From Hyaloraphidium curvatum SAG 235-1 (taxonomy: Eukaryota > Fungi > Monoblepharomycota): a stretch of 64,000 nucleotides of DNA. The stretch spans positions 248,001 through 312,000 of the forward strand of contig JAIVFI010000032.1 in assembly GCA_025558095.1 (NCBI GenBank). Reading direction: 5' to 3'. The translations under genes were made by a program, and so were the position numbers. Positions 1-9,574 of the stretch are shown in pieces. The notes below the pieces were generated by a model, which saw nothing but the letters and a program-made list of their open reading frames with translations, searched no databases and was not told the origin of the DNA. How positions within the stretch are numbered: the first letter of the stretch is position 1; each line of letters starts with the position of its first letter.

Positions 1-337
1 TTTTCCTGTCCTTATTCATGGACTTTGAGATGAAGCTGGCAATGGAGTTGAGGGCCTTCTCCTTCTGCCGCCTCGCTTTGATCGTGGGCTCGAACTCCTT
101 GATGCTAAGAGCCCAGAGCCAGGTCTCCATGTTCCACTCGCGGCCTAGTGCTTCCAATCTAGTCTGCAGCTGCTGGCGCCGCTCCGCATTTGCTGAACAG
201 TCTGCCACACAGGAGAAGGCCCTCAACTCCATTGCCAGCTTCATCTCAAAGTCCATGAAGGACAGGAAAACTGGGAAAATGAAAAAGACACACGACGACG
301 ATGAACTTTGCAATTAGCAGCAAACTCATGGTGTAAC
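1..337. mobile_element. Fold-back (inverted) fragment of a non-LTR retrotransposon 3' end
   Basis: 1-201 is the reverse complement of ~11812-12008 and 211-337 matches ~11950-12072 forward. 1-63 and 211-270 form an inverted repeat with a 3-nt indel. Confidence 0.8.
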
Positions 338-687
338 AGCGGCCAAGCCAGGGGCAGGTCCGGGTCACCAATACTATTCTATTCAAGACCTATATCAACG
401 GGACCATGGTGTTCCCACCTGGCAATGGATACACAGAGAGGTCTAGGCCATTGTGAGGACATGACAGAGGAGCAGTTCCCTGGTGTTAGACCACTGGACT
501 AAAGAGAAGGTACCACGTTTCTGGCCCAAGTGGTCTGACGTCTAAGAGCATGCCACACATAGGGAGCCATCACCTGGCATGTTGCGTGACCTACAGCTGG
601 TGGTTCAGTGGTTGCCCTAGGCTACGTGTCTTGCATCCGAGACCTCCAACCAAACGACTAGGATTCTTGCGGCGGGTGTGTGGCTCT

Positions 688-911
688 TGTTGGAATGGAT
701 CGTTGCTACGATTCTGTATCAATAGGGAGTCTATTGGCGTGTGGGGATACTTGGGTACGACCGGAGGGGTCATCTAGGGACTTGTCATCGCAAGGGAATG
801 GACAACGGGTCAACGTGAAACTGTCCCTCTCCCCATCCCGTCCATCTGAGTTCTGACCCGGTTCAGACCACTGGGGCTACGTCTTCCCCACGCCCCATAG
901 CCACTCCAACA
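688..911 (+). repeat. 5' LTR of the Copia element
   Basis: Identical by eye to 6039-6262; 7-bp terminal inverted repeats. Confidence 0.97.
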
Positions 912-924
912 GGTCTATGAGCCC
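912..924 (+). promoter_or_regulatory. Primer-binding site, half-tRNAiMet (anticodon-arm) type
   Basis: GGTCTATGAGCCC directly after the LTR resembles the copia/Ty5-type GGTTATGAGCCC with one extra C. Confidence 0.75.
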
Positions 925-1085
925 AAAGGGTGTCCAGAACACTTTTGCGCGGCTTTGAAGTTGCGTGTGGCGCAACCAGCCGAGGGGACCGCATCCAGCT
1001 GAGTCTGGTCTCCAGGACCGCCTGGGTGGACTCAGTGGGCGCTAGAAAGAGCGCGTGAAGCACTAGAGGTGCTGCGGCGGCCGGG

Positions 1086-4000
1086 ATGGAGATTTCGGTC
1101 GGAGGAACCCGTGTGGCATTGTTTGGGGGGGCCAAGCTCGAGGAAACCGGATCACAAACCAATTACCAGGATTGGTTAATTGACATCAAGGCCAAGCTCC
1201 AGAGGGAGAGTGACTGGCAAATTGTGACTGGAAAGGTGGCAAAGCCCGTGGTAGGGCAGGGAGGAAAGACGGAAGATGATTTGTCAGCCTGGAACACGAA
1301 GGACCAGAAAGCTCAAGGGATCCTGGTAGGATCACTCTCTATTGGTCTCAAAAGGATCTGCAGCAGGATGGACACTGCTAAGGACATCTGGGACTACCTA
1401 GAGAAGCGTTTCGTGACGGAAAATGTGGCGCAGCAAGGGAACGCCGAGGTCCAGTACTACAGCTTTGAGTTCATCAAAACCGACCGGGTGGCTCCGAATT
1501 TTACCCGCTTCATGCAGAAAAAGATGGAAGTTGAAGCACTGGGAAAGCTGAAGGGAGATGACGATGATATGAGCATCTGGAGGAAAGTCCTGAAGGACCT
1601 ACCTGAGTTCGATCAAGTTCGGGCCGAGATTGACGGCATTTGGCTGGGAGCACAGACCAAACACGAGTGGAAGACTGAAAATGGAGTGAAGAAACACCCT
1701 ATCTTGAACGTTGCATACCTTCAGAAGAGGATGGAGATGGAAGAGGAGACTATGATCAAGCGAGCTGAGCAAAATGGTGATACGTACTCACCTGGGGCAG
1801 CCAACATAACCGTGAATCCCGCTCCAAACACGTTGATGTACGCTCTAAACCGTGGCAGGGGTCGCGGAGGATCACGGGGTGGCCATGGAGGTGACCGCGG
1901 GGGTTCAAGGGGTCGCGGGCGAGGGTTCGGAAATCGCGGGGGTCGGCAGGCCACGGCGGAGGGCGAAAACGGCTCGGGAATCACGTGCCTCTGCTGCGGG
2001 AAGGGTGGACACGTCAAGAAGGACTGCACCCATCGTGACAAAACCTGCAACAAGTGCGGAAAGGACGGTCATCTCGAGGCCGTGTGCTGGAGGAAGGACG
2101 ATGGGAAAACGGCACGAGAGCAGCAGAACACGCTCACCCTGGGCGATCTCCCCGATCTGGAAGATCGATTCGGCGCGTTCCTGTTCATGATGGAGGGCGG
2201 AATCGAGGGAAACGATGGGGAGACGACGGGGGACGGTGGATACGAAAAACCCCCGGAACACGTCGTGCACGCGGCGAAGACGGGCCAGGAGATGCGCGGC
2301 AGGCTGATGGGGGATAGCGGCGCGTCCGTGCACGCGACGGGAATCAGGGAACTGCTCTACGGCATCAAGCCGTGCGATGCAGTTGATGTTCGAATGGGAA
2401 AAGGGATCGCGCGTGCGATCGAAGTCGGAAAGCTCAAGATCAAGCTCACCAATTCTGGCGACATCGTCACCCTGGAAGATGTGCTTTTCATCAAAGATCT
2501 TCCTGCAACGCTCATTTCGATTGGGAGACTAGGGCAGATGGGATACTACACGCTTCTGGGTCCGGATGGAGGGGCCATCACCAAGGGCGGCGACGTGCGG
2601 GGCACTTGCCGCATAGATCGTCACGTTTACTATCTCAACGCGGAAATCCTCAACGAGCATGACGAACAGATCATGCTGAGTGCTCAGGAAGGGGATTTGA
2701 GCGCGGAGATTGCGCATGGGCGCTGCGGGCACTACCCGATCGCGGCACTCAGGAAGGTTCAACAGGCTGGGATTGTGGATGGATTGGAGGAGTACGTGTT
2801 TGCTGGAAACCACAACAACTTCTGTAAGGAGTGCGTGATGGGGAAGATGCATCAGTTGCCCTATCCGGAGTCGGAGCGGAAAGTCTCGCGGCCGTTTGAG
2901 CTGACTCACTGGGACCTGATACAATCGGACGTTGCAACGGTGCATGGAGAACGCTGGGCATTGCATGCAGTCGACGAGTACACTTCTGCGGAGTTTGCGT
3001 TCCTATTGAAGCACAAATCGGAGGCGGAGGACTGGATGATGCACTTTGCCGAGTGGGTGAAGAACCAGTTCAGCCTAAAGGTCGGATGCATGCGGGTCGA
3101 TCCCGGAGGTGAATTCTCGTCAAAACGGCTCGAAGCGTACTGCAAGAACGAGGGAATCAAGTTGGAATCGTCGGTAACGAATCGGCCTGCGCAGAACGGA
3201 GTCATTGAGCGGCGGAACCGGACGGCTGAGGAAGGGACCCGGACCATCCTGATCGACTCGAAAGCGCCGAAGTCGTTATGGGGATACGCACTGCATCATC
3301 ACATCAACACACGGAATCGTTTGCCGAACACAAAGACGTGGCAGAAAGGGTCTACGCCGTTTCAACTGCTGACTGGGAGACGGGCGAACATTAGCCACAT
3401 CCGACGTTTCGGAGAAACGTGTTACGCGATCGTCGACAAGGATAAGCGCGGCAAATGGGATGCTAAGGCGGTACAATGCCGCTACCTGGGAATGAGCTCG
3501 CGATCGAAGGCATTTACGGTCCAGAATCTTGAGACCGGGCGGATTTTTGACTCACGTGATGTCGTTTTCGAGGAACGCTGGTCAAACAAGACGCTCAAGA
3601 GCTACATGCAGGTTCTGGAAAGCAGAGTTTCGGTCGAAAAACTACCTGAGGACGCGGACCCGAGCGCTGTATTGAACCGTCGACTTGCAGTGGAGGAGTC
3701 GGCGCAGCCTGAGGAATTGGAGGCGTCACCGGAGACGCCACGGCGGGTCCGTTCCGCAGATCCAATCGACGACGGCAACCAGGAGCATCGTGGGACACAG
3801 GGAGACCGTGTGCAGCGTCAACCTGAGCGCCAGGAGGCCGGGGGAGGAGGTCAAAGACTGGAAGTTGGAGGTACTCAACATCAATCTTCAAGTTCCGGCA
3901 GCCGAGGCGCGGATTTACGTCTGTCACGCGATCAACGAGCTCAGAGCGAAAGTGAGGACGAGCTGGTGGCTCGTGGAAGAGGCTCTGGGAACAGTGGAAG

Positions 4001-5990
4001 TGGCAATCCAGGGGGAGGAAAGGCAGTTGGTGGATCGCAACTTTCTGGTGATCGTGCGGCTAGGGAAGCCACAGACCAACGTGGGGAGCCTGGAGGAGCA
4101 TCTTCATCAAGCAGCGGAGCTCAGGGAGGCGCTGGGGCGGCTGGAACGGGCTCTAAGATACCTTTACCTACAAGGTCATCCAGCAGAGCTCCAAGACCTC
4201 CTGGGGAGTGGTGGAAAGCCCCCAACACGAGCAACGAGAAGGAGATCAACGTGATCACGCTGGAATCGATCAATTTCCTGATGGAGGAGGTCCAGGACCA
4301 CCTGGACTGGCAGGGACACCTACCAACTTGGGAGGACATGGCACACATGGATGGAATCTTTGCTGCAAGCACTGGAGCACGTGTACCACGGAACTATGCA
4401 GAGGCAATGCGTTCAGAGGATCGTGAGATGTGGGCCAAGGCAATGGAACGTGAGATTGGCAACTTCAAGAGCAGAGATGCGTACAACATCATGGGCTTGC
4501 CTGAGGGCAAGGAAAAATTCGCGGTTGGAAGCCAATTTGTATTTGACCTCAAACCTGGAGCTGATGGCAGCATTGTGGGGGAGGAAAACTACAAGGCTCG
4601 ATGGGTGGCAAGGGGTGATTGGCAGGATCCATCTTCTTTTGGTCAATCCTTTGCACCTGTACCTTCTGCTGCTGCTGTACGGCTTTTCTTTTGGCTTTCT
4701 GCTCAGAACAACATGATTGTACATCAGGCAGATGCAAACGCGGCATTCCTACAGGCTAAGCTCCAGGAGAACGAGGAAGTTTACTTGTATCCAGCTCAAG
4801 GGATGGATTTACCTGAGTTTACTGATGGAAGACCTACTGTAATTCGACCTGGAGTCGCGGTTTATGGACTTGTGCAAGCTGCACGTGCTTGGCACAGACA
4901 CCTGCACGAGATACTCACGGAGATGGGGCTTATACGTTGCTCAAAGGAGTACTGCATCTACTTTCTGCGGCAAGATGATTGGTTTCTTTTGATGATTATT
5001 CATGTGGACGACTTTGGATGTAGCTCAACGGACGAAAAACGGACGATTGCATTTCTTGAGGAGCTGGGAAAGCGGATTAAGATACGTTATATGGGTCGCA
5101 TGAAAAAGTTCCTGGCTTTGGAAATCAAGCAGGACGAGAAGGCTGGAACAATCACAATCAAGCAGTCCAACTACATCAAGAAAGCCTTGGAGGACTTCGG
5201 AATGGACACTTGCAATGCAGTTTCTGTACCTATGGACGTTGGGGTGAAGCTCAGGAAACGGAAGACGGAGTTGTCTGCTGCTGAGGAGCAGGAAATCGGA
5301 CGTTTTCCGTTCAGATCAATGGTGGGAAGTTGGATGTATGCTATGAACTTCACCAGGCCAGACATTGCCTTACCTATTATCACGGAGAGCCGTCATGGGA
5401 TGGCACCTACTCGTGAAGCAGTGGAGCAAGTCAAGAAGACAACCAGATACTTGAAGGGAACAGCTGATTTTGGCTTGGTTTACAAGAGGGATCCGAATCT
5501 GGACATGACCAAAGCATTGCATGGATATGCAGACGCCAGTTTTGCTGGGGATCTTGACACTGGGAAGTCAACAACTGGGGTTGTAGTGATGATGGGGAAC
5601 GGTCTTATCATCTACAAGTCGCAACTGCAACCAGTGGTGGCTCTTTCAACAACAGAGGCCGAGTACATGGCTCTATCTTATGCTGGACGTCAAGTTGCGT
5701 GGCTAAGGAGTTTATTGGAGGAATTGGGATTTCCTCAGCAAGGGCCAACAGTCATCAAGGAGGACAATGAGGGGGCTATCAAGCTGGCGCAGAATCCTGT
5801 CTTTCATGAACGTACCAAGCACATTGGAGTGCAGTACCATTTTGTGAGGGAGAAAATTGATAGTGGAGAGATACAGCTGGAGTACATCAACACAGAGGAC
5901 CAGCTTGCGGATCTGCTCACCAAACAGCTACCAAGGGAGAAGTTTCAACGTTTCAGGGCACTTATGGGAATTGTAGAGATTCGTGACTAA
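1086..5990 (+). CDS. Copia Gag-Pol polyprotein (Gag, two CCHC knuckles, PR, IN, RT, RNase H), 1634 aa
   Basis: CLCCGKGGHVKKDC and CNKCGKDGHLEAVC knuckles; PR DSGAS; IN HGRCGH..CKEC, HWD, DPGGEF, QNGVIER; RT YKARWVARG, HVDD; RNase H YADASFA, STTEAEY, EDN, DQLADLLTK. PR-IN-RT-RH order is diagnostic of Copia. Confidence 0.98.
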   Translation: MEISVGGTRVALFGGAKLEETGSQTNYQDWLIDIKAKLQRESDWQIVTGKVAKPVVGQGGKTEDDLSAWNTKDQKAQGILVGSLSIGLKRICSRMDTAKDIWDYLEKRFVTENVAQQGNAEVQYYSFEFIKTDRVAPNFTRFMQKKMEVEALGKLKGDDDDMSIWRKVLKDLPEFDQVRAEIDGIWLGAQTKHEWKTENGVKKHPILNVAYLQKRMEMEEETMIKRAEQNGDTYSPGAANITVNPAPNTLMYALNRGRGRGGSRGGHGGDRGGSRGRGRGFGNRGGRQATAEGENGSGITCLCCGKGGHVKKDCTHRDKTCNKCGKDGHLEAVCWRKDDGKTAREQQNTLTLGDLPDLEDRFGAFLFMMEGGIEGNDGETTGDGGYEKPPEHVVHAAKTGQEMRGRLMGDSGASVHATGIRELLYGIKPCDAVDVRMGKGIARAIEVGKLKIKLTNSGDIVTLEDVLFIKDLPATLISIGRLGQMGYYTLLGPDGGAITKGGDVRGTCRIDRHVYYLNAEILNEHDEQIMLSAQEGDLSAEIAHGRCGHYPIAALRKVQQAGIVDGLEEYVFAGNHNNFCKECVMGKMHQLPYPESERKVSRPFELTHWDLIQSDVATVHGERWALHAVDEYTSAEFAFLLKHKSEAEDWMMHFAEWVKNQFSLKVGCMRVDPGGEFSSKRLEAYCKNEGIKLESSVTNRPAQNGVIERRNRTAEEGTRTILIDSKAPKSLWGYALHHHINTRNRLPNTKTWQKGSTPFQLLTGRRANISHIRRFGETCYAIVDKDKRGKWDAKAVQCRYLGMSSRSKAFTVQNLETGRIFDSRDVVFEERWSNKTLKSYMQVLESRVSVEKLPEDADPSAVLNRRLAVEESAQPEELEASPETPRRVRSADPIDDGNQEHRGTQGDRVQRQPERQEAGGGGQRLEVGGTQHQSSSSGSRGADLRLSRDQRAQSESEDELVARGRGSGNSGSGNPGGGKAVGGSQLSGDRAAREATDQRGEPGGASSSSSGAQGGAGAAGTGSKIPLPTRSSSRAPRPPGEWWKAPNTSNEKEINVITLESINFLMEEVQDHLDWQGHLPTWEDMAHMDGIFAASTGARVPRNYAEAMRSEDREMWAKAMEREIGNFKSRDAYNIMGLPEGKEKFAVGSQFVFDLKPGADGSIVGEENYKARWVARGDWQDPSSFGQSFAPVPSAAAVRLFFWLSAQNNMIVHQADANAAFLQAKLQENEEVYLYPAQGMDLPEFTDGRPTVIRPGVAVYGLVQAARAWHRHLHEILTEMGLIRCSKEYCIYFLRQDDWFLLMIIHVDDFGCSSTDEKRTIAFLEELGKRIKIRYMGRMKKFLALEIKQDEKAGTITIKQSNYIKKALEDFGMDTCNAVSVPMDVGVKLRKRKTELSAAEEQEIGRFPFRSMVGSWMYAMNFTRPDIALPIITESRHGMAPTREAVEQVKKTTRYLKGTADFGLVYKRDPNLDMTKALHGYADASFAGDLDTGKSTTGVVVMMGNGLIIYKSQLQPVVALSTTEAEYMALSYAGRQVAWLRSLLEELGFPQQGPTVIKEDNEGAIKLAQNPVFHERTKHIGVQYHFVREKIDSGEIQLEYINTEDQLADLLTKQLPREKFQRFRALMGIVEIRD

Positions 5991-6038
5991 CTTTGGGGAT
6001 TTCTGGACACTTCTTGGGAATCTTGCAACGAGGGGGAG

Positions 6039-6262
6039 TGTTGGAATGGATCGTTGCTACGATTCTGTATCAATAGGGAGTCTATTGGCGTGTGGGGATA
6101 CTTGGGTACGACCGGAGGGGTCATCTAGGGACTTGTCATCGCAAGGGAATGGACAACGGGTCAACGTGAAACTGTCCCTCTCCCCATCCCGTCCATCTGA
6201 GTTCTGACCCGGTTCAGACCACTGGGGCTACGTCTTCCCCACGCCCCATAGCCACTCCAACA
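6039..6262 (+). repeat. 3' LTR of the Copia element
   Basis: Follows the PPT, identical to the 5' LTR, followed by TSD GCTCT. Confidence 0.97.
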
Positions 6263-6494
6263 GCTCTGTCTCAATGCATGATCGCTGTGGCATGCCAGCA
6301 TGCTTCAGGCTAGGATTTTGGGAGTGATTGTGCTGCTCTGGTCTTCAAGCGGTGTTGGTTTGTTGGCCGACATGCCACATGCCTTGAGCCACGCTCTGGC
6401 TACGAACGACAATATGAGATGCATATCGTCCCATGAAGGGAGGAGATGTCACCTGTGCGGTCAGGTCGTGCTATACGGTCGAGGACCGGAAAAG

Positions 6495-6718
6495 TGTTGG
6501 AGTGGCTATGGGGCGTGGGGAAGACGTAGCCCCAGTGGTCTGAACCGGGTCAGAACTCAGATGGACGGGATGGGGAGAGGGACAGTTTCACGTTTACCCG
6601 TTGCCCATTCCCTTGCGATGACAAGTCCCTAGATGACCCCTCCGGTCGTACCCAAGTATCCCCACACGCCAATAGACTCCCTATTGAGATAGAATTGTAG
6701 CAACAATCCATTCCAACA
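6495..6718 (-). repeat. LTR (3' LTR of the minus-strand element)
   Basis: Reverse complement of the 224-bp LTR; 6 substitutions versus 688-911 by manual comparison. Confidence 0.95.
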
Positions 6719-7102
6719 CTCCCCCTTGTTGCAAGATTCCCTCCAGTGCATATCAATCCCAACAACGTAGCAATGCATAGGTTCCAACACTCCCCCTCGT
6801 TGCAAAGTTGTCTCCCAGTTATGTTCTCCAGTTGCTATCCAGTTGCAATTATCAAGTCACTTTCAATACTCCCCTCCTGTCAAGAATCCCTGAGAAATCT
6901 CCAGTTTCACTTTCAAATCTCCACAAATCCCCGAAGTGCTTTGAAATGCTCAAACTTAGCTATCCATTTTTGGTCCTTCAAGTCCAGTCATTTGCATCAC
7001 AGTGTTATGCACCTCTTGCTAGTTTCCTGCACACAGACTGGTTCTGCCTCGTTGCACATTGCACAGATCCTTCACGTAAGGTCTGCTGATCTAAATCAAA
7101 GC

Positions 7103-9121
7103 TCAACAGTCCCATTGCATGCGTGGTTTCTCCAGGTCCTTCCACCTGGTCAGTTTCCACCATTCCAGAGTCTTCCTAGAGTATCTGGCTCTTCCATTGG
7201 TCACATGCTCTCCTCCTTTAGAGTCCATCCAGTTGTCCTTCAAGCTTGTTGGCAAAGCACTCTGATGATGTCCTTGCAACACCTCCTCCACGTGTCCCGT
7301 GTTGACTGGATCAAAAGCACATCTCCCAGAAAGTGATTCACCAACAGCAAGTCTCCCAGAAAGTGAGTCACCCTTCATCACTCCCCCTGAATCGCTTTCT
7401 TCTGCTCCTTCCAGGAATGGGTCGTTTCCTGTACAGTGCCCAAGAACATCTGTATCACCAATACCCTTTGTCTCTGGTTCACCACCCTCAGGATCCAGTT
7501 TGTTGCAAGCATCAGATCTCACAGACTCTCCATGCAGCTCCACCTCCTCCTGAATCATGTCTGGTTCGGAGTGATCTTCCATCAAAATGTCCCTGTCAAG
7601 TTCGCAAAGCAGCTGTTCATTTGCATCTTTAGTCTCCTTTCCCAAGTCAGCAACAAAATCTGTTTCAGCATCTCCATTCTGAACCAAATTCAAATCCCCC
7701 TGGTTGTCCAGCATGATCAAATCGTCTTGCATGAGTGTCTGCTGCATCCCTCCATATGATGCGTCCAATTTCTCAGCTCTGCTGAAGGTACTTCCACTTC
7801 CACAGTCAGGCCCTCCTCTGGTCAAGTCACACACCTCATGTCCTTCGAAATCCGAGCCTCTAGCTCCCTCTGCAAGGTAGGGATCATCCTCCACGATCTC
7901 TGCGTTCATCTGATACGAGCCGTTGTGCAAACTCAGTGTTCCCATGAGTTCACCCTCTGGGGAAAGAATATTGCCACCCTCTGGGCCCAACAGCACCAGG
8001 AATCCCATCTTCACCACGCTCTCAATCGATGGCAATGCTCCACATCGATCTCCAATGTTTGCATCCTCCATCAAAGTGATGATCTTCCCTGTCAAGAACC
8101 TCAGTTGTGTCTTCTGAATACCGCCCGCCATCGCCGATCCCTTCGTGGTCCCAAAGTCACGTAGGCCACAAACATCCTCTCCAAAAAGTGGTTCCTCGAC
8201 CTCCAACACGTTCCTAGACGCGTTATTTTCCTCCATGGTCCTGTCCCCGAGAGCATTCACGTGTGCTGCCTTCCTGGAACCCTCCAGCACTTCGCGCCCG
8301 CGCTCCTCCCCGTGGAACGCGTTCTCCTTCCAATCCTTGACTCCCAGTGCCACTACCATATCCACGAGGTTCTCCTTGATCAGATTATCGTCCAAGGTAA
8401 GCTCCATCTGCTTCTCCTCACGCGCATTGGTCTCCGCGATCCTCTTACAGAGTGTCTCCCAGTGTCCAGGTTCCCCGCACCGAAGACACGCGTTTCCGCG
8501 GTGTAAGCAATTCCTGGCGTAATGCCCAACCTCTCCACACATATAGCAAGCGTTTCTCGACGCGTTTCTCGTGCTTCCACGTGATTGATCACCACCTCGC
8601 TCGACACCGCGTCGTTTCTGACCTCTGACACGTTTTCCATCGCCATCTCGGCCTCCCTTGGATGCTCCTCCATCTGATCTTCGAGTTTCCACGGTCGATT
8701 GTGCTCCCTGGCACTCCTCATTGGCGCTCCGTCCCGCTGTGCCTTCAGACGTGTTCCAGAGTTCGTTCTCCCTCGCGAATTTCCTCTCCAGACCGTCCCA
8801 GATCTCCCTGGCAGTGTCCACAGAGAAGAATACACGTTGCAGTGCCCTTGGTAGAGTCTCCAGGATCAATCCCTGGGCCACTTGGTCGTGTGCAATCCAG
8901 TCGTCCATGTCCTTGGTCGTGGCCCCTGCCACACCCACAGTTGGCTTTGCCATTGCTCCTGTCACGTAGGGCAACAGTCCTTCTATCTGGAGCTTCTTTT
9001 CCATCGCAAGCTTCCAGTCTCGGAGGTTCCTTCCGTACTCCCTGAGAATGGTCCCCTGTACCACTCTCCATATTCTGCCTCCCATCGTGAACTCAATTCC
9101 ACGATCCCGCAAGCTCCTCAT
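7103..9121 (-). CDS. Diverged Gag N-terminus, two CCHC knuckles, pseudo-protease and acidic tail (no integrase or RT)
   Basis: Aligns by eye to the neighbouring Gag (DTAREIWDGLERKF vs DTAKDIWDYLEKRF). Knuckles CYMCGEVGHYARNC and CLRCGEPGHWETLC. Protease region has ENNAS in place of DSGAS. Ends near an EWWK motif shared with the IN-RT linker. First ATG at 9121. Confidence 0.85.
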   Translation of the reverse strand: MRSLRDRGIEFTMGGRIWRVVQGTILREYGRNLRDWKLAMEKKLQIEGLLPYVTGAMAKPTVGVAGATTKDMDDWIAHDQVAQGLILETLPRALQRVFFSVDTAREIWDGLERKFARENELWNTSEGTAGRSANEECQGAQSTVETRRSDGGASKGGRDGDGKRVRGQKRRGVERGGDQSRGSTRNASRNACYMCGEVGHYARNCLHRGNACLRCGEPGHWETLCKRIAETNAREEKQMELTLDDNLIKENLVDMVVALGVKDWKENAFHGEERGREVLEGSRKAAHVNALGDRTMEENNASRNVLEVEEPLFGEDVCGLRDFGTTKGSAMAGGIQKTQLRFLTGKIITLMEDANIGDRCGALPSIESVVKMGFLVLLGPEGGNILSPEGELMGTLSLHNGSYQMNAEIVEDDPYLAEGARGSDFEGHEVCDLTRGGPDCGSGSTFSRAEKLDASYGGMQQTLMQDDLIMLDNQGDLNLVQNGDAETDFVADLGKETKDANEQLLCELDRDILMEDHSEPDMIQEEVELHGESVRSDACNKLDPEGGEPETKGIGDTDVLGHCTGNDPFLEGAEESDSGGVMKGDSLSGRLAVGESLSGRCAFDPVNTGHVEEVLQGHHQSALPTSLKDNWMDSKGGEHVTNGRARYSRKTLEWWKLTRWKDLEKPRMQWDC

Positions 9122-9271
9122 CTTGAGCACGCTCTCTTTCAGCGTTCTCCAACCTGTCCAGGCAGTTCCAGAACCAGCGTTGGTAGATTGCGGCTCCCCC
9201 GGCTATGTGCGCCACCCGGCAACTTCACAGCCGCATCTTTCGTCTTTCACAACCCTTTGGGCTCATAGACC

Positions 9272-9344
9272 TGTTGGAGTGGCTATGGGGCGTGGGGAAG
9301 ACGTAGCCCCAGTGGTCTGAACCGGGTCAGAACTCAGATGGACG
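9272..9344 (-). repeat. Partial LTR (73 bp, U5 end) adjacent to the PBS
   Basis: Reverse complement of the last 73 nt of the LTR; breaks at ...CAGATGGACG. Confidence 0.93.
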
Positions 9345-9345
9345 T

Positions 9346-9569
9346 TGTTGGAATGGATTGTTGCTACGATTCTATCTCAATAGGGAGTCTATTGGCGTGT
9401 GGGGATACTTGGGTACGACCGGAGGGGTCATCTAGGGACTTGTCATCGCAAGGGAATGGACAACGGGTAAACGTGAAACTGTCCCTCTCCCCATCCCGTC
9501 CATCTGAGTTCTGACCCGGTTCAGACCACTGGGGCTACGTCTTCCCCACGCCCCATAGCCACTCCAACA
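9346..9569 (+). repeat. Full LTR in inverted orientation forming the right terminus
   Basis: 224 bp. Shares the four diagnostic variants of the 6495-6718 LTR (GATTGTTG, CTATCTCAAT, GGTAAACG) and differs from it at 2 sites. Confidence 0.95.
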
Positions 9570-9574
9570 AAAAG

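Follow-up and report, generated by a model that had tools for sequence, protein, structure and literature searches.

Three PPT/U3-start junctions are stacked one behind the other at the 3' end of a non-autonomous Copia element, and the middle one of the three has provided the left end of integrated LTRs. The arrangement is probably best read as the result of LTR replacement, in the course of which the LTR would have been exchanged for that of an adjoining autonomous Copia while a stub of the previous LTR was left behind. Both elements reside in a window of 64 kb with a G+C content of 62%, which is the whole stretch of DNA that was analysed, in a genome of 31.9 Mb represented by 55 contigs.

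A gag-only element and its autonomous partner

The autonomous partner Copia extends on the plus strand from 688 to 6262, with LTRs of 224 bp each (688-911 and 6039-6262) and the TSD GCTCT. Its ORF (1086-5990, plus strand) encodes 1634 amino acids arranged as gag-PR-IN-RT. Pfam recognizes the gag domain PF14223 followed by Pol_BBD, gag_pre-integrs, rve and RVT_2 in this order, a protease barrel is present and the gene order PR-IN-RT is that of Ty1/Copia. The partner possesses one PPT/U3 junction, at 6038/6039. An earlier note on this DNA had ascribed a single junction to the autonomous element, which is correct for the partner but does not extend to another autonomous Copia family of this genome, where two to three junctions are found.

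The non-autonomous element runs on the minus strand from 9569 down to 6495 and is bordered by the TSD CTTTT (6490-6494 and 9570-9574). Its 3' LTR of 224 bp (6495-6718, TGTTGG...CCAACA) has 97-99% identity to the LTRs of the partner. Beyond the junction region, a relic of the pol 3' end together with the 3' UTR (6891-7040, minus strand) is collinear with the partner in a global alignment to window positions 5860-6038, and the sole ORF of 675 amino acids (7103-9130, minus strand) codes for a Copia gag with a CCHC knuckle and a degenerate protease-like region. Pfam reports in this ORF only PF14223, the Copia-type gag that is contained in the ORFs of both elements, and PF00098, while BLASTP aligns residues 286-415 at low identity with residues 403-524 of the protease region of the partner. 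A PBS-like sequence with the next 7 nt (9252-9271, minus strand) stands directly after the LTR. The 5' end of the window copy is aberrant (9272-9569), with the last 73 nt of the LTR (9344-9272, minus strand) and then an inverted full LTR (9346-9569). As the TSD CTTTT encloses this whole structure, an aberrant fold-back cDNA would have been integrated via the TGTTGG end of the inverted LTR. Intact copies elsewhere are 3,002 bp long, carry a 224-bp LTR on each side and are flanked by the 5-bp TSDs CTTTG, GTGAT, CCCAG and GAAGG. The element displays the Ty1/Copia features of TG...CA LTR ends, a 5-bp TSD, a PBS by the 5' LTR and a PPT by the 3' LTR; equally, with a length below 4 kb, a single gag ORF in which Pfam finds no PR, IN or RT domains and nine copies, it is a TR-GAG-like, gag-only Copia dependent on the adjoining autonomous Copia.

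That this parasite carries the LTR of the autonomous partner by replacement, as had been supposed in the earlier note, agrees with the distribution of similarity between the two elements. The LTRs are about 99% identical, compared with about 75% in the 5' UTR and 28-40% amino-acid identity in gag, so that, as in LTR swapping, LTR identity to the autonomous element lies far above the identity of the internal region. Also identical in both elements are the PBS with its next 7 nt and the 23 nt upstream of the LTR, which in the window (PPT_C, see below, against 6016-6038) deviate at one A/G site that reads G in older copies. Near-identical LTRs and flanks set against a diverged 5' UTR and gag point to an LTR module that was acquired from the partner or remains in continual exchange with it. 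In a set of 24 LTR copies, the sites that are variable among the younger ones fall mostly into LTR positions 1-36 (6718-6683 and 688-723), and outside these positions the LTRs of both elements hardly differ; the same variants occur in both, which suggests ongoing exchange. That the RNAs of the two elements recombine is shown by a chimera (L015, 2001-5731; C25) with the TSD GTGTC, in which the partner 5' LTR and partner positions 1-239 and 1825-4491 are joined to the last 787 bp of the parasite with all three junctions.

The junction region is probably transcribed. In run X3, the contigs of which are guessed to represent RNA, the internal region 6699-9245 is covered at about 1,200-1,460x as compared with 2-3x in the flank, whereby one contig at about 1,460x spans all three junctions (6699-7255). 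The variants in these contigs are those of the C5/C20 subfamily with a 717-aa ORF, not those of the window copy. A piece from a polyA RNA-seq run of a freshwater metagenome (6795-6971) spans junction A and ends inside PPT_B, and parts of the element are present in runs labelled freshwater metagenome. Since contigs cannot show transcript ends, the depth speaks for probable transcription of the region only.

Anatomy and use of the three junctions

When the minus strand is read from 6890 to 6690, three purine tracts ending in GGGGAG become visible, each then followed by an att-like TRTTGRAA, and the three junctions lie exactly where the earlier note had placed them, at 6869/6868 (A), 6790/6789 (B) and 6719/6718 (C). 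The features, all on the minus strand, succeed each other without gaps. PPT_A (6869-6890), unchanged in 9/9 copies, precedes stub A (6806-6868), a presumed remnant of an earlier U3 of 63 nt that starts with the att-like TATTGAAA at 6868. PPT_B (6790-6805), 16 nt identical to those of the partner, precedes stub B (6742-6789), the 48 nt of which start with TGTTGGAA at 6789, read TGTTGGAACC... and equal the first 48 nt of a 295-bp form of the LTR. PPT_C (6719-6741), 23 nt in common with the partner, borders on the 3' LTR, which begins at 6718. Junction C is the one normally used, as the 5' LTRs of intact copies start at C, and with their length of 224 bp identify it as the usual junction of plus-strand priming. 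A 14-nt motif that spans the junction, GGGGAGTRTTGRAA, occurs four times in the 64-kb window as opposed to 0 times in 100 shuffles; its four sites are A, B, C and the lone junction of the partner (6033-6046), all of them Copia 3' ends.

Likeness to the start of the present LTR rises from A to B to C, in agreement with the earlier note, with the likeness of A limited to the PPT and the first 8 nt. Past these 8 nt, no similarity of stub A to the present LTR was detected (P about 0.6-0.8), and A and C agree at 26/33 positions (1/2000 shuffles). Local alignment of B with the PPT/U3 start of the partner gives 35/40 matches, including 24/24 across the junction, and 0/2000 shuffles reach this score. 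The identity covers the 16-nt PPT and the 8-nt att exactly, the next 40 nt are unlike every LTR found and stub B resembles the present LTR through one 8-nt block only, while the similarity between B and A is restricted to 12/14 positions.

In the global alignment, parasite positions 7040-6860 are collinear with the pol end, the 3' UTR, the PPT and the first LTR bases of the partner. As the positional counterpart of the junction of the partner, A is the own ancestral LTR edge of the parasite lineage and not a copy of the current PPT. Because stub A is without similarity to any LTR past its first 8 nt, it is its position that lets it be presumed a former U3.

The 3' region of the element is present in nine genomic copies, 93-100% identical to the window copy, and all nine carry A, B and C, so the arrangement predates all present copies. 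The variation that the earlier note had proposed to look for, with copies carrying one, two or three stubs, is not seen among them. Relatives with only A, or with only A and B, were not found; of the candidates, L024 proved to be an old partner copy, and L023 covers internal sequence only. Further signals within the stack are faint. A possible fourth att-like start in stub B (6764 downwards), which has no PPT, is not significant against the U3 of the partner (P 0.18) and is weakly significant against stub A. Equally, stems of hairpins as in the Pseudoviridae can be drawn at junctions B and C, but the folding is no better than that of shuffles (z -1.4 to +1.0).

The start of stub B occurs at three further loci beyond the nine internal copies, each time abutting unrelated DNA. 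At L021 (4001-4295), a 295-bp solo LTR consisting of stub B, PPT_C and the normal LTR is flanked by the TSD TGCAC, and at L014 a B-started solo LTR of the same kind, with the TSD TGAAG and a 12-nt irregularity at the 3' end, begins at 6468. The predicted empty site, composed of the left flank, one TSD copy and the right flank, was encountered in paralogous LINE copies 79 times for L021 and 51 times for L014, and the reversed pattern, which served as control, 0 times. These empty sites in LINE paralogs indicate that both solo LTRs are precise integrations with their left end at B. The third locus, L022 (7422-7692; C9), contains an insertion of 271 bp with the TSD CTGCC as read from the sequence, the ends of which are the start of C and the inverted start of B. 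It is built from LTR positions 1-162, 90 nt of gag in inverted orientation and, likewise inverted, the first 34 nt of stub B. It looks like another integrated aberrant product of reverse transcription, for which no paralogous empty site was found. B-started insertions in the genome thus number three, two being solo LTRs; insertions starting at A were not found in the genome.

The plus-strand primer determines the left end of the DNA in the standard model of reverse transcription (PMC6894440). Priming at PPT_B would create LTRs that are 71 bp longer (295 bp) at both ends, and as priming at B lengthens the LTRs, only such an element could collapse to a 295-bp solo LTR. The RNA would start within the LTR and be identical whichever primer had made the parent; as transcription begins inside the LTR, the difference in length would not be inherited and the long form would reflect the primer of that one cycle. 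B has kept a complete PPT and an end recognised by integrase and is occasionally used in place of C. The view of B as a dead fossil had to be given up, as two TSD-flanked solo LTRs and one aberrant insertion begin exactly at B.

The surroundings of the insertions show some regularities of their own. Insertions of the Copia pair recur in one LINE family (L014 at about 5003 and about 6468; L020 at about 2000; L021 at about 4001), in which also both long solo LTRs sit, and two non-autonomous copies are located 7 bp apart at CTTTG, in the RT FADD motif of different LINE copies. The LINE insertions represent either a target preference or nested transposon blocks. An apparently clean LTR swap in a third Copia family, seen between L026 and L025, is really an 88-nt LINE 3'-end fragment 7 nt into the LTR (L026, 942-1040; C22); this fragment recurs at many loci, including window positions 295-382.

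Origin of the stacked junctions

In the LTR replacement that we consider the probable origin of the stack, minus-strand DNA would copy a partner-type U3 and PPT and, at a point 16-23 nt upstream of this PPT, would then switch to a co-packaged parasite RNA, where it would land in the old U3 some 50-60 nt after the U3 begins. Each jump would replace the LTR and leave a stub of the previous one, with A as the ancestral edge and B and C as partner-type junctions added later. With helper RNA as the first template a heterogeneous stack would arise, while the same jump within one family would cause a tandem duplication.

Two observations speak for two separate template switches at B and C rather than for one tandem duplication. 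The exact match of B to the partner across the junction, compared with its limited similarity to A, favours a switch onto a partner-type RNA over a local duplication. The breakpoints are unlike each other, as partner-type sequence starts 16 nt upstream of B versus 23 nt upstream of C and the stubs measure 63 versus 48 nt, which favours separate events, and the 7 nt GGGAATC precede C and are absent before B, the reverse of what a tandem duplication predicts. Of the serial template switches with retained stubs that the earlier note had envisaged, the replacement can be upheld, but not the different helpers, as no counterpart of either stub was found at other LTR starts of the genome or the metagenome contigs.

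To trace the source of the stubs, the whole genome was searched for their patterns, allowing up to 3 mismatches, and by BLAST with the 242-nt region, which returned nothing but copies of the element itself and the three insertions that begin at B. No resemblance to the stubs is seen in four other Copia lineages (L025-L034) at their 3' ends, and two exact-pattern scans of metagenome contigs for the stubs gave no match. The expectation that the stubs would match the U3 starts of other Copia subfamilies has thus failed in the genome as well as in the metagenome contigs. As no LTR starts like stub A or stub B, the donor LTRs are hypothetical and distinct helpers unproven; the donor of B, which would be a different or an older variant of the partner, may simply have been an earlier form within the one partner lineage. 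The earlier note had held that stubs which match no other LTR family and are better explained as local tandem duplications would speak against its proposal. The former holds for the genome and the metagenome contigs, but tandem duplication is probably not the better account.

Stacked junctions are present also in an unrelated autonomous Copia family with 35% RT identity, the 3' end of which contains a perfect tandem repeat of 144 bp. Each unit comprises 91 nt of 3' UTR, including the PPT, followed by the first 53 nt of U3, and a GGAG microhomology marks the point, about 53 nt inside U3, at which the units join. One element on C37 (L035, 7716-8017) has two junctions, at 7814 and 7958, and one on C31 (L036, 6338-6783) has three, at 6436, 6580 and 6724; the last junction is where the 5' LTR of either element starts. 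The LTR pairs of these elements are 99-100% identical, so the duplications are recent events. Back-jumps of reverse transcriptase from upstream of the PPT to a point about 50 nt inside U3 would thus be a repeated event in this organism. By analogy, this parallel supports the mechanism of back-jumping and illustrates that autonomous elements can carry stacks too. As a perfect 144-bp duplication demonstrates that stacking is possible without a change of helper, stacking might be a general by-product of back-jumps of reverse transcriptase, which weakens it as a sign of LTR capture.

In addition, a short motif, AACTGGAG (CTGGAG or CTGGGAG after A or C), has five occurrences, which are spread over the stubs and the sequence directly before A (6741-6910, minus strand). 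Stubs A and B both end beside a motif of this type, and the 144-bp repeat of the other Copia family joins at GGAG. The AACTGGAG-type motif may be a preferred landing site for template switches.

Taken further, back-jumps might be a regular error of the Copias of this organism, with tandem units as the outcome within a family and LTR replacement plus a stub as the outcome between the RNAs of parasite and helper. The stack would then constitute a dated record of changes of helper, and, with a working PPT and att retained in the stubs, a single RNA could yield insertions with two LTR lengths, a non-heritable dimorphism by choice of primer. This generalization is plausible, if not quite probable.

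A local tandem duplication, in which the PPT and the first 50-60 nt of U3 were duplicated twice by intramolecular back-jumps, the copies diverged and the terminal LTR was homogenised with the partner via homologous exchange in PPT/att, seems rather unlikely. The perfect 144-bp duplications and triplications document that a like unit is duplicated in this genome, and stubs without an external source are in line with such an origin. The tail of stub B is weakly similar to stub A (shuffle P about 0.001, with 5/218 internal control windows scoring equally), and as the first 36 nt are the most variable part of the LTR, an old copy could have come to look different. The junction itself argues against it, since B agrees at 24/24 positions with the partner and is clearly unlike A, and decay that erased positions 25-48 of stub B should not have spared all 24 positions at the junction. 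Equally, the boundaries of the presumptive units do not repeat, neither in the occurrence of GGGAATC nor in the length of the stubs, and A, being collinear with the single junction of the partner, was not copied from the current PPT. Replacement of the LTR accommodates these observations better than duplication.

Whatever their origin, the junctions might also form a selected array of redundant plus-strand primers, comparable to Sireviruses, that is kept for a benefit in replication or recombination. B and C hold the octamer AGGGGGAG, which is repeated in Sireviruses (PMC2829016), all three junctions are conserved in all copies and B is demonstrably usable. We consider such an array improbable, because the copies are young (93-100% identical) so that their conservation says little on selection, the oldest copy has two changes in the att of B, no insertion with A as LTR end was found in the genome and the use of B yields no heritable change. 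Moreover, the upstream PPTs of Sireviruses are without an att site (PMC2829016), whereas those found here have one. Chance occurrence of purine-rich motifs in a GC-rich 3' UTR, for which only the shortness of the motifs could be adduced, is refuted by the four 14-nt motifs against none in the shuffles, by the shuffle tests of the alignments and by the use of B by integrase.

Significance and comparison with known systems

Tracking of helpers by non-autonomous LTR retrotransposons is usually inferred from shared LTRs only, while the element described here preserves what are probably the breakpoints of the exchange, legible to the single base. The B-started insertions answer, for one element, a question that has been raised for Sireviruses and tested in retroviral vectors, in that a plus strand primed at a second PPT near the LTR can go through transfer to integration. 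Annotated LTR lengths and boundaries may consequently differ among copies of one family for reasons unrelated to descent. Beyond this, the three stacked signals add modestly to the knowledge of the exchange of ends between parasite and helper.

The closest parallel is LTR swapping in soybean, where Du et al. 2010 (Plant Cell 22:48, cited in PMC6894440) reportedly described autonomous and non-autonomous partners and the recombination of their co-packaged RNAs in reverse transcription. In both systems, LTRs are common to the non-autonomous element and its autonomous partner while the internal regions have diverged. In the element analysed here, stubs of earlier PPT/U3 junctions are stacked upstream of the new LTR so that breakpoints are legible, and the host is not a crop plant but has a small (32-Mb), GC-rich genome seen in freshwater metagenome runs.

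Internal or central PPTs such as PPT2 of Ty1 and the cPPT of HIV-1 are situated kilobases upstream in pol and give a discontinuity of the plus strand. A second PPT is said to have been tested in retroviral vectors by Bowman, Hu and Pathak in 1996 (cited in PMC2829016). Common to central PPTs, vector tests and the element analysed here is a second start of the plus strand, with competition between primers deciding which strong-stop DNA is transferred. Unlike central PPTs, the second primer lies here 71 nt upstream, and natural insertions with a lengthened LTR exist.

In Sireviruses, several AGGGGGAG octamers are clustered no more than a few hundred bp from the 3' LTR (Bousios et al. 2010, PMC2829016). 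Among 63 upstream PPTs of Sireviruses, 0 are followed by the TG that a usable attachment site requires, and there is no known instance of their use (PMC2829016). The clustering of AGGGGGAG near a Ty1/Copia 3' LTR and the question of upstream priming are shared with the element presented here. On the other hand, its upstream PPTs are followed by the att-like TGTTGGAA or TATTGAAA, B has yielded integrated LTRs and there are three copies only, which differ in the sequence of the stub. The Sirevirus type of cluster, with many identical octamers and upstream copies that have no attachment site, is therefore not what this 3' end represents. Extra PPTs are also known from single elements, for example Bongo3 (PMC3605345).

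With respect to the element as a whole, TR-GAGs are non-autonomous elements with LTRs and an ORF for gag with a zinc knuckle, and according to its description TR-GAG1 has only one PPT and lacks internal duplicated regions (Chaparro et al. 2015, PMC4350172). As in TR-GAG, less than 4 kb suffice here for LTRs, a PBS, a PPT, a 5-bp TSD and one gag ORF without IN or RT. It departs from TR-GAG1 in retaining degenerate protease-like sequence along with remains of the pol 3' end, and in that its LTR is shared with an identified partner. What sets it apart from these systems is the combination of heterogeneous stubs, in which breakpoints are preserved, with natural insertions as proof that an upstream PPT/att is used.
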